The position numbers and the translations under genes are program-made. Under the pieces are notes generated by a model. It saw only the letters and a list, made by a program, of their open reading frames with translations. It made no database searches and was not told the origin of the DNA. Shown piece after piece: positions 30,592-52,702 of a stretch of 64,000 nt of DNA (position 1 is its first letter; every line of letters starts with the position of its first letter). The DNA lies in sequence record PQ464590.1; one strand, given 5' to 3'.

Positions 30592-30718
30592 TGAGGTTAT
30601 TTCACGGAATCGAACCGTATCTACAGGCTGAATATTTCCTGCATCCCCTGCTTAGAGATGCCTACTCACAAGTACAAGCTACTATTCCTAGTACTAATCA
30701 AGTGCAAGGGCAATAACC
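30592..30718 (-). ncRNA. 127 nt tRNA-like RNA (acceptor stem and T-arm only)
   Basis: GGTTATT/AATAACC; TACGG-TTCGATT-CCGTG; no D or anticodon consensus. Confidence 0.55.
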
Positions 30719-51180: not shown

Positions 51181-52446
51181 TTATGATACAAATTTTACAG
51201 GTAAGTGTTTAGTGGCAAGACAACTGAATAGTGCTTCAAGACCTTGCTCTTGTGCTTCTTCGTAAGTAAGAATAACATCATCGTACCCGTACATACGGTC
51301 GTACTCACGAATTGCTTCTAGACCTTCTGATTTCTTGTCCTCATCGTAATGCTCTTCGAACTCTTTAGACAAATCATTTAGGCTCAAAATCAAATGTACC
51401 GTAGTACTATCCAGATCAACTTCGTACTCACGTTCTTCATGACTCTTACGTAGTAGTGCTTGTCCCATCTTCACGAGTAATGCACCTTGATCTAGAGTAT
51501 CATATTCTTGACCAGATGTACGTGGTGGGATTAGTTCGAAGTTGTATCGGCTTAGACAGATTAGATAGAACAACGCTTCAGTGTGCATTTTATTGAATGC
51601 AGCTAGTTCTTCGTCATTCATATCCGCACCAGTTGTATCTCGGAAGAATGTCATGAATGCACCACGATTGAACGAGTTTTTGTACGCAAATTCATTACGT
51701 TCACGACTGTCATTACTTAGACTAGCCATGTCCATGATACTTTCTTCTGCTTCTTCAGCCGTGAATACTGTACCGTCTATCTTCACTGAACCAATTCGAC
51801 TCTCGTACAATTCACGATACCGCTCAACTGTTGCTTTGAACTTCGCGTCCTGTGCTGCGTATTTTCGATTCTGCATCTCTTCGAACTGATACAGTTTATA
51901 ATCAGTGTATCGAGATGGGTTTACAGTATCGTCATACGTTTCGACTGTACCTTGGATTAGTACTTGATATACTTCTTCCAGTACTGGATAGAATCCAATG
52001 AATTTCTTACCGTACGTTCCAGCTTCACAGTACAATGCACCTTCTCGAATCATATCGTTGATGATCTCGAAAGTCAAGTCTTCAGCAGGGATATCACAAT
52101 ACTCATCATCACGACGAGAATAGTTTTCATCATCTTCTGGTAGCTTTGGATTAGGAGAGTAATTCTCTTTGATTGTATCTAATGTGAACTGTGCATATGG
52201 ATGTTCGGGATCTGTTATTTCAAAGATTCCGTAATCTTCGTACGTCGCTTCTAATGGGAACCCTACAGTACTGAAGTTGTCATAGAAATAACAACCTAAT
52301 CCTCGGTGCATTGTTTGATTCGAAGGGTCATGACCAGGATAGAGGGGTTCAGTGAAGTTATTAGAAATGATGTACATCAATCGAACTTTATCACTAGGGG
52401 AAATAGGTGCTCGACTTACAGCACAGGTACTATTGAAACTTCCCAT
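51181..52446 (-). CDS. hypothetical protein
   Basis: 421 aa; MGSFNSTCAVSRAPI; AGGA RBS. Confidence 0.85.
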   Translation of the reverse strand: MGSFNSTCAVSRAPISPSDKVRLMYIISNNFTEPLYPGHDPSNQTMHRGLGCYFYDNFSTVGFPLEATYEDYGIFEITDPEHPYAQFTLDTIKENYSPNPKLPEDDENYSRRDDEYCDIPAEDLTFEIINDMIREGALYCEAGTYGKKFIGFYPVLEEVYQVLIQGTVETYDDTVNPSRYTDYKLYQFEEMQNRKYAAQDAKFKATVERYRELYESRIGSVKIDGTVFTAEEAEESIMDMASLSNDSRERNEFAYKNSFNRGAFMTFFRDTTGADMNDEELAAFNKMHTEALFYLICLSRYNFELIPPRTSGQEYDTLDQGALLVKMGQALLRKSHEEREYEVDLDSTTVHLILSLNDLSKEFEEHYDEDKKSEGLEAIREYDRMYGYDDVILTYEEAQEQGLEALFSCLATKHLPVKFVS

Positions 52447-52461
52447 TATGTTTTCCTTTTA

Positions 52462-52563
52462 GGTAGCCAGTAAAGGGACTCGAACCCTTATTCCATCTCC
52501 CTTACGGGAGGGGGATCATCCAGAACACTAGGGAATTGAACCCTATAGCTTCCTGCACTGGCT
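52462..52563 (-). ncRNA. ~100 nt tRNA-like RNA with two T-loop hairpins
   Basis: AGCCAGT/ACTGGCT-ACC; TAGGG-TTCAATT-CCCTA and AAGGG-TTCGAGT-CCCTT; GNRA hairpin CTCCC-GTAA-GGGAG. Confidence 0.65.
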
Positions 52564-52572
52564 TTATGAATA

Positions 52573-52663
<91 letters not shown>

Positions 52664-52670
52664 GTACTTA

Positions 52671-52702
52671 TATTATATCACATTTTCAGTACTTATCCCA
52701 AA
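52671..52702 (-). promoter_or_regulatory. class-2 phage promoter upstream of tRNA-Ser(ACT)
   Basis: Identical to 40739-40770. Confidence 0.8.

Follow-up and report, generated by a model that had tools for sequence, protein, structure and literature searches.

The stretch between a tRNA gene and a protein-coding gene of a jumbo phage, for which a preliminary description had proposed a tRNA-like RNA with two T-loops, raises the question of whether an RNA gene is present there and what such an RNA would do. The window, that is the whole stretch of 64,000 nucleotides analysed here, matches Erwinia phage Hallingskeid (PQ464590.1, 366 kb) at 100% identity, and its coordinates are those of the record minus 62,000. 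Hallingskeid is a jumbo myovirus and kin of the RaK2, PBECO4 and GAP32 group (PMC11780129). The record annotates the tRNA-Ser gene and the flanking hypothetical proteins and carries no annotation at positions 52462-52563, where the candidate RNA lies.

The transcription unit

All features of the locus are on the minus strand. A promoter-like site (TTGGGA-18 nt-TG-TATAAT, 52672-52701), with 10 of 12 hexamer matches and an extended -10 TG, is located directly upstream of tRNA-Ser and is kept in the homologous loci. Its assignment to a class of repeated promoters is in keeping with the core TGTGATATAAT, which is found in five exact copies in the window (14075, 30546, 40740, 52672 and 57964), all on the minus strand and one of them upstream of tRNA-Ser. 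These copies, which include the extended -10, mostly have TTTTTGGGATAA before them, and TTTTTGGGATAA...TGTGATATAAT is in our reading a repeated phage promoter motif. Of the promoter copies, two directly precede the two tRNA-Ser genes.

The first gene of the unit is the class II tRNA-Ser(ACU) at 52573-52663 (ARAGORN; Rfam RF00005 53.9 bits), which has a variable arm with a GAAA loop and shows 90-100% identity in relatives. Its anticodon is ACU (A34) and not the usual GCU, and is kept across the clade including the Munch-like phages (seen in Hallingskeid, L002, L003, L145-L152 and L315-L323); unrelated IMG/VR tRNA-Ser genes sharing the same 3' end have the anticodon GCU. The encoded CCA of this tRNA is followed by a 9-nt spacer (UAUUCAUAA, 52564-52572) and then by the tRNA-like RNA, in agreement with the distance given in the preliminary description. 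On the other side, the ACC tail of the RNA is followed by U-AAAAGGAAAACAUA-AUG, where AUG is the start of a 421-aa gene (51181-52446). The Shine-Dalgarno sequence AAGGA of this gene starts 6 nt past the ACC tail and is free in every fold computed. A terminator-like site was looked for between the RNA and the 421-aa gene and none was found. Since promoter, tRNA-Ser, RNA and mRNA are laid out without a terminator, they can be considered one transcription unit. The 421-aa protein has no Pfam match and belongs to PHROG 5960, a family of unknown function, and neither Pfam nor PHROG hinted at a function of the neighbouring proteins or at a partner. In the uncultured relatives L315-L319 a 79-aa ORF is present between promoter and tRNA-Ser (at about 2037-2276), as it is in L152 and L320-322; in L315-L319 this places the tRNA and the RNA downstream of a coding gene in one unit.

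Anatomy of the tRNA-like RNA

The sequence features listed in the preliminary description are all real and lie on the minus strand where it had placed them: an acceptor stem with an ACC tail, two T-arms and a GNRA hairpin are present at 52462-52563. The RNA, 102 nt with its ACC tail, is documented by its fold, its homologues, covariation and purifying selection. Two folds are referred to below, the four-way junction (Model A) and a five-arm fold (Model B).

The acceptor stem is formed by AGCCAGUG (52556-52563) and UACUGGCU (52465-52472), which pair over 8 bp, and the 3' strand shows covariation with its partner. The tail ACC (52462-52464), followed by U, is found in relatives as ACC, AACC or an encoded CCA, the latter in L151 and L293. 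After the acceptor 5' strand comes CAGGAAGCUA (52546-52555), which includes the invariant CAGGA (C12-A16); it represents the 5' strand of the lower extended hairpin in Model A and a single-stranded joiner in Model B. The first T-arm, UAGGG-UUCAAUU-CCCUA (52529-52545), has a T-loop of the tRNA type and is the best-conserved part of the RNA, with UAUAGGGUUCRAUUCCCU invariant in all lineages. Its loop varies only between A and G at the position that corresponds to R57, and reads UUCAAUU in Hallingskeid and L145 and UUCGAUU in L149, L155, L315 and L151. The T-arm is as described in Hallingskeid, but its outer U-A pair is not conserved, being U.U in L149 and L155.

The segment GU-GUUCU-GGA-UGAUC (52514-52528) forms a short hairpin, here called hairpin X, in Model B, while in Model A its UUCUG is the 3' strand of the lower hairpin; the GGA loop of hairpin X is invariant. 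It is followed by the variable hairpin CC-C-CUCCC-GUAA-GGGAG-AU-GG (52493-52513), which has a GNRA loop and resembles the long variable arm of class II tRNAs. This hairpin is present in every lineage though the sequences are unrelated, with loops GUAA, GAUA and GGAA in three lineages and GUUUG in L149. An invariant AAU is found just 5' of the second T-arm, AAGGG-UUCGAGU-CCCUU (52473-52489), a canonical T-arm immediately stacked on the acceptor stem. The loops of both T-arms agree with the pattern U54-U55-C56-R57-A58, and each is closed by a G-C pair. The corresponding DNA motif GGTTCRANNCC has eight matches in the window versus 0.4 expected, five in tRNAs, two in the tRNA-like RNA and one in another unannotated tRNA-like stretch.

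Relatives and losses

Blastn of the RNA in near and distant modes against 50,697 phage records returned Hallingskeid itself only. An IMG/VR locus search seeded with the protein of the 421-aa neighbour gave nothing, element-specific exact and gapped DNA patterns had no match in IMG/VR and GTDB genomes, and one further such pattern matched L293 and L324 only. A metagenome scan with the pattern TATAGGGTTCRATTCCCT, which also matches ordinary tRNA T-arms, added no family members among the matches listed. A search with the downstream protein yielded graded uncultured relatives with 93% to 41% identity, the upstream gene gave more, and on the contigs of these relatives the RNA was recovered in four further uncultured lineages.

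The RNA is present in L145-147 (downstream protein 93% identical), L149 (81%), L155 and L315-319 (73%) and L151 (69%). Contigs L150 and L323 (80%), which come from two different samples, carry an identical short form of 49 nt to which the first T-arm contributes its 5' half and the second its 3' half, and we regard this form as a deletion by recombination between both GGTTCGA T-loop repeats. It is located at L150:1936-1989 and, in L323, upstream of a 330-aa gene, and its hybrid T-stem pairs poorly. In L148 (89%) the RNA is deleted and only the palindrome AGCCAATTGGCT is left (L148:1968-1989), a perfect 12-nt palindrome built from the outer bases of the acceptor stem. The tRNA-Ser is present without the RNA in L152 (46%), L320-322 and the Munch-like phages, and both are missing from L153 and L154. 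In Munch and fENko-Kae01, the nearest isolates, tRNA-Ser lies 18 nt from the orthologous downstream gene, and compared to these phages the RNA appears as a clean insertion/deletion of ~110 nt. The distant carriers of the 421-aa gene CBB, GAP32, pEa_SNUABM_19 and XbC2 have a protein-coding gene upstream of it, with no tRNA and no RNA. The simplest history would be one origin in the ancestor of the clade of at least 69% identity, then two losses.

Outside this clade, the IMG/VR contig L293 (5.9 kb) scored 42 bits with model R1 at 536-638 on the minus strand. The L293 element and L151 have the first T-arm and the following UGUGUCGUGG in common; L293 further combines a second T-arm with an acceptor stem of 7 bp and an encoded ACCA, and is without the long variable hairpin. 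ARAGORN found no tRNA on this contig. The L293 element is probably a distant relative of the RNA. Another stretch, of ~130 nt, is found in an IMG/VR phage tRNA cluster (L324:5592-5725, minus strand), where it adjoins tRNA-Tyr; it has three T-arm motifs and a 6-bp closing stem, and within it ARAGORN calls a 'tRNA-Pro' of 95 nt. When two T-loops were scanned for generically, more than 118 loci came up, and a 7-bp stem closes 23 of these against a chance expectation of ~15, estimated from the number of registers tested. Model R1 scores the two-T-loop loci at 20-36 bits and ordinary class II tRNAs at 20-35 bits. Since the closures are near chance and the scores are like those of class II tRNAs, we do not claim a broad class.

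Selection on the RNA

Hallingskeid and L145 differ by one change in 103 nt of the RNA, while the four-fold sites of the adjacent gene are 74% identical (n = 153); at a neutral rate of 26%, the binomial probability of at most one change is ~1e-12. This sole change, C to A in L145, adds an A-U pair to the variable hairpin. At deeper divergence, where the four-fold identity drops to 52-57%, the RNA is still 69-82% identical and the differences are mostly in the variable hairpin. As judged from this conservation, the tRNA-like RNA is a real RNA gene under selection which was missed in annotation. Its distribution indicates that it is also dispensable, having been deleted twice and being absent from more distant relatives. 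If independent, as they appear to be, the two losses show that selection is weak or conditional, and repeated loss argues for an accessory, condition-dependent role.

Secondary structure

The preliminary description had drawn the RNA as a four-way junction. In Hallingskeid this is the minimum-energy fold (-40.7 kcal/mol, z = -3.1, ViennaRNA), and none of 200 shuffles folded as well as the tRNA-like RNA. It is also the RNAalifold consensus, with 7 covarying pairs; covariation was assessed on five different sequences, which represent four lineages, and on one distant candidate. By nearest-neighbour energy, Model A is 5.7 kcal/mol more stable than Model B in Hallingskeid. In L151 the five-arm fold is the minimum-energy structure. 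By pair counting, Model A has 96% of cells paired and 7 pairs changed on both sides, and Model B has 92% and 10 pairs, versus 34-61% and 0-1 pairs in controls with slid partners. The covariation score is 0.357 for the five-arm fold versus 0.279 for the four-way fold.

Both folds have the acceptor stem, the first T-arm, the GNRA hairpin and the second T-arm. The search for covariance in relatives, which had been suggested as a check, found compensatory changes in the acceptor stem, the GNRA hairpin and the second T-stem. The first acceptor pair varies between A-U, C-G and, in L293, U-A, the second changes from G-C to A-U and the seventh from G.U to A-U. The canonical T-arm next to the acceptor is fully borne out, with 100% of cells paired and covariation at pairs 2 (A-U/G-C) and 3 (G-C/A-U/U-A). 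In the GNRA hairpin pair counting likewise detected pairs changed on both sides.

The folds differ in the 5' half. The four-way drawing is sound as a minimum-energy fold, but its lower extended helix CAGGA/UUCUG (C12-A16 with about U42-G46) has zero covariation among the homologues and is interrupted in L151 by a G.G mismatch. This helix and hairpin X (41-45/49-53, GGA loop) are mutually exclusive. In hairpin X three of five pairs change on both sides (G-C/A-U; U-A/U-G/C-G; C-G/G-C), and the L151 substitution that breaks the lower extended helix is compensated in it. Only 72% of the cells of hairpin X are paired, because of U.U mismatches in Hallingskeid and L155. The two folds of the 5' half could be alternative conformers, and, by modelling on five sequences, the four-way drawing is one of two viable folds. 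In outline the five-arm fold is a class II cloverleaf, composed of acceptor, hairpin 1 (the first T-arm), a short hairpin, a long variable hairpin and a T-arm.

Proposed role and alternative explanations

Our main proposal, to which we give about even chances, is that the locus encodes a genuine RNA of ~100 nt with the plan of a class II tRNA, which would not decode and would be excised and act in trans as a tRNA mimic. The mimicry suggested in the preliminary description agrees with a structured tRNA-like RNA with two genuine T-arms inside a tRNA transcription unit, and a tRNA mimic that is processed and does not decode appears to be the best reading available. In this plan an 8-bp acceptor on a 5-bp T-arm, an NCC/CCA tail and a GNRA hairpin like a variable arm would be combined with a second T-arm hairpin of the tRNA type and a short GG-bearing element, these two standing for the D and anticodon arms.

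The repeated phage promoter would drive one transcript of tRNA-Ser(ACU), the RNA and the downstream mRNA. RNase P would then cut its 5' end, and 3' trimming and CCA repair or addition would complete the other end. An acceptor/T-arm stack, a canonical T-loop and an NCC/CCA tail are the determinants for RNase P, 3' trimming and the CCA-adding enzyme, and from the 13-bp acceptor/T-arm stack, the T-loop and the tail of this RNA its excision as a stable RNA of ~100 nt is expected, for which T4 species 1 RNA is a precedent. The 3' tail is inconsistent between lineages (ACC, AACC, CCA), which is against a tRNA mimic. The stable RNA may present its acceptor/T-arm and T-loop ('elbow') surfaces to a tRNA-handling factor, candidates being a host nuclease directed at tRNAs or an enzyme of tRNA processing or modification. 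The function would be accessory, as lineages with the deletion persist.

The tRNA signals could also work in cis only, as processing punctuation by which RNase P and 3' nucleases cut tRNA-Ser from the mRNA; the cuts would give the tRNA its 3' trailer and the mRNA its 5' end, and the RNA set free would have no role. The splitting of polycistronic tRNA transcripts by RNase P is established in E. coli, and the RNA is placed exactly as punctuation would require, between tRNA-Ser (9 nt) and the Shine-Dalgarno of the 421-aa gene (6 nt) with no terminator; in Munch-like phages the tRNA itself adjoins the orthologous gene. We still consider this explanation unlikely. For punctuation an acceptor/T-arm minihelix would suffice, which leaves the first T-arm, CAGGA, GGA and the GNRA hairpin unexplained, relatives and outgroups with the same gene arrangement do without the RNA, and there is no fold in which the Shine-Dalgarno is sequestered. 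That these four elements are conserved and yet needless for the processing signal argues for an action in trans.

Within the tRNA-mimic reading a more specific form can be drawn from the GG dinucleotides in CAGGA and in the GGA loop, which are invariant and unpaired and of which L293 has both. A T-loop of the tRNA type is completed by G18-G19 of the D-loop, and the two GG dinucleotides could be D-loop-like partners, one for each T-loop. The RNA might then be a 'double-elbow' mimic, in which each T-loop is completed by a GG on an acceptor-bearing scaffold and which draws off, as decoy or sponge, a host defence nuclease reading the T-loop or elbow. Phage tRNAs are understood partly as counter-measures to tRNA-cleaving defences (PMC13096335), and prokaryotic Schlafen-type tRNases cleaving the T-loop have been described recently (PMC13462974). 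By analogy to both, a decoy or sponge role is attractive, though a double-elbow RNA could equally titrate another elbow-reading factor, and in all its detail this form of the proposal is speculative and rather unlikely. If true, a decoy for tRNA-targeting immunity would be a counter-defence made of RNA only, beside the known phage strategy of replacement tRNAs.

In the preliminary description the two T-loops were instead considered to interdigitate, as in the double T-loop module of RNase P, T-boxes and the L1 stalk, and to dock on tRNA elbows. Two T-loop motifs are indeed combined in one small RNA, the T-arm stems of the five-arm fold are of similar length (4-5 bp) as are the L1 stalk hairpins (PMC3664808), and further examples of the module are expected (PMC4810234). 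The core of the module, however, is AG..A plus UG..A, purine-rich, with G at pentaloop position 2 (PMC3664808; PMC4810234), while the Hallingskeid loops UUCAA and UUCGA are both UUCRA, with U at position 2 as in tRNA, and are without the xG..A core. In the modelled four-way fold the loops are moreover at very different distances from the junction (~12 bp versus 5 bp), which makes mutual docking unlikely, and the invariant GGs would offer them ordinary D-loop-like partners. This part of the preliminary description is not borne out, and we regard the interdigitated module as improbable here.

The stretch could be functionless, either a decaying tRNA pseudogene or debris of T-loop recombination. 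Such an origin would fit its scores below tRNA thresholds, its two losses, one of them visibly by recombination of the GGTTCGA repeats, and the irregular stretches with several T-arms in other phage tRNA clusters, L324 being an example. The strong purifying selection, the compensatory changes in three or four helices and the base pair made by the sole substitution of L145 all point the other way, and the pseudogene reading appears disfavoured by the data and improbable.

The weakest alternative, to which we give hardly any weight, is an unusual decoding class II tRNA without D arm, with hairpin 1 as anticodon arm (CAA or CGA): RF00005 does align the RNA end to end, with hairpin 1 as a 5-bp stem and a 7-nt loop with U33 and the GNRA hairpin as variable arm, and L151 and L293 encode CCA, but the alignment deletes the D arm and puts U at position 37, its score is 20.0 bits for a gathering threshold of 29 (E = 0.14 in a 501-nt search), ARAGORN made no tRNA call by default or with -ps and gave only at 70% stringency a different and poorly paired fold, and the supposed anticodon would switch between CGA (Ser) and CAA (Leu) in relatives otherwise alike. 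Read as an anticodon loop, hairpin 1 would thus combine a CAA/CGA switch with U37, whereas read as a T-loop it is exactly the consensus with R57 as the sole variable position, which favours a non-decoding T-arm; we infer that the RNA does not decode.

Comparison with known RNA classes

An Rfam search gave no family at threshold for the RNA. A tmRNA or permuted tmRNA was rejected, as ARAGORN -m found no gene and RF04321 reached 15.5 bits against a threshold of 47, and tRNA-Sec, an intron-containing tRNA and a mitochondrial-type tRNA were dropped after the results of RF00005/Rfam and ARAGORN. The inverted-repeat ends and the L148 palindrome had brought a MITE-like mobile element into consideration, which was discarded because the RNA is single-copy in the phage and in the window. 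That CAGGAAG might pair with the 3' strand of the tRNA-Ser acceptor was also discarded, since the pairing is conserved no further than GGA.

The tRNA feature which the RNA does have is an acceptor stem on a 5-bp T-stem with a U54-U55-C56-R57-A58 loop, both stems covarying. It shares with class II tRNAs (Ser, Leu, Tyr) the acceptor on a 5-bp T-stem, the canonical T-loop, the NCC/CCA tail and a long hairpin like a variable arm, with a GNRA loop as in the neighbouring tRNA-Ser. It differs from them by having no D arm and no credible anticodon arm, by an acceptor of 8 bp and by the score below threshold. With the double T-loop module of RNase P, T-box stem I and the L1 stalk it has two T-loop motifs in one RNA in common; the pentaloops of that module, however, are a joiner, bulge or loop and are packed together, while the Hallingskeid loops cap separate hairpins of the tRNA type without the xG..A core. 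Mimicry of acceptor, T-arm or elbow to engage tRNA-handling factors is also seen in YrlA/Y RNAs, the tRNA-like domain of tmRNA, plant-virus tRNA-like structures and mascRNA, and we know of none of these described with two T-arms.

Stable tRNA-like RNAs of phages go back to the T4 species 1 and 2 RNAs, and to our knowledge none has an assigned function. By analogy, the Hallingskeid RNA would belong to this old and unexplained class. Its closest described analogue appears to be T4 species 1 RNA (rnaC), which is small and stable, is also phage-encoded, lies by tRNA genes where the T4 tRNA cluster ends, has an acceptor-like terminal pairing and a canonical T-arm at its 3' strand (CCGGG-UUCGAAU-CCCGG), and has other hairpins in the places of the D and anticodon arms; neither RNA has an anticodon or a known function. 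Unlike the Hallingskeid RNA, which has 102 nt, two T-arms and a clean 8-bp acceptor stem, rnaC has 139 nt, one T-loop and a very long first arm. No homology to rnaC was detected, as model R1 had no match in the T4 tRNA region (L314) at E <= 0.001 and there is no Rfam family to compare. In that region rnaC (L314:1409-1547, minus strand) has z = -4.6 and is composed of an acceptor-like stem, a long arm, a hairpin and the canonical T-arm; rnaD (L314:1554-1672, minus strand) has no T-arm and z = -0.8.

The small and clean structure, the graded natural variants with two deletion forms and a cultured phage-host pair make the Hallingskeid RNA a tractable case of this class.

A second tRNA-like candidate in the window

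Conserved tRNA-derived genes in phage tRNA clusters are, as this locus shows, missed by tRNA finders and Rfam. A second unannotated tRNA-like candidate is found in the window at 30596-30716 on the minus strand. Its acceptor GGUUAUU/AAUAACC is 7 bp long, its T-arm reads UACGG-UUCGAUU-CCGUG, the place of the D arm is taken by a long arm, and a hairpin of 6 bp carries a loop of 10 nt. Its fold z-score is only -0.86, and blastn in phage records gave no relatives. In the GenBank record hypothetical-protein genes are drawn over the candidate, and a repeated promoter copy directly follows it.
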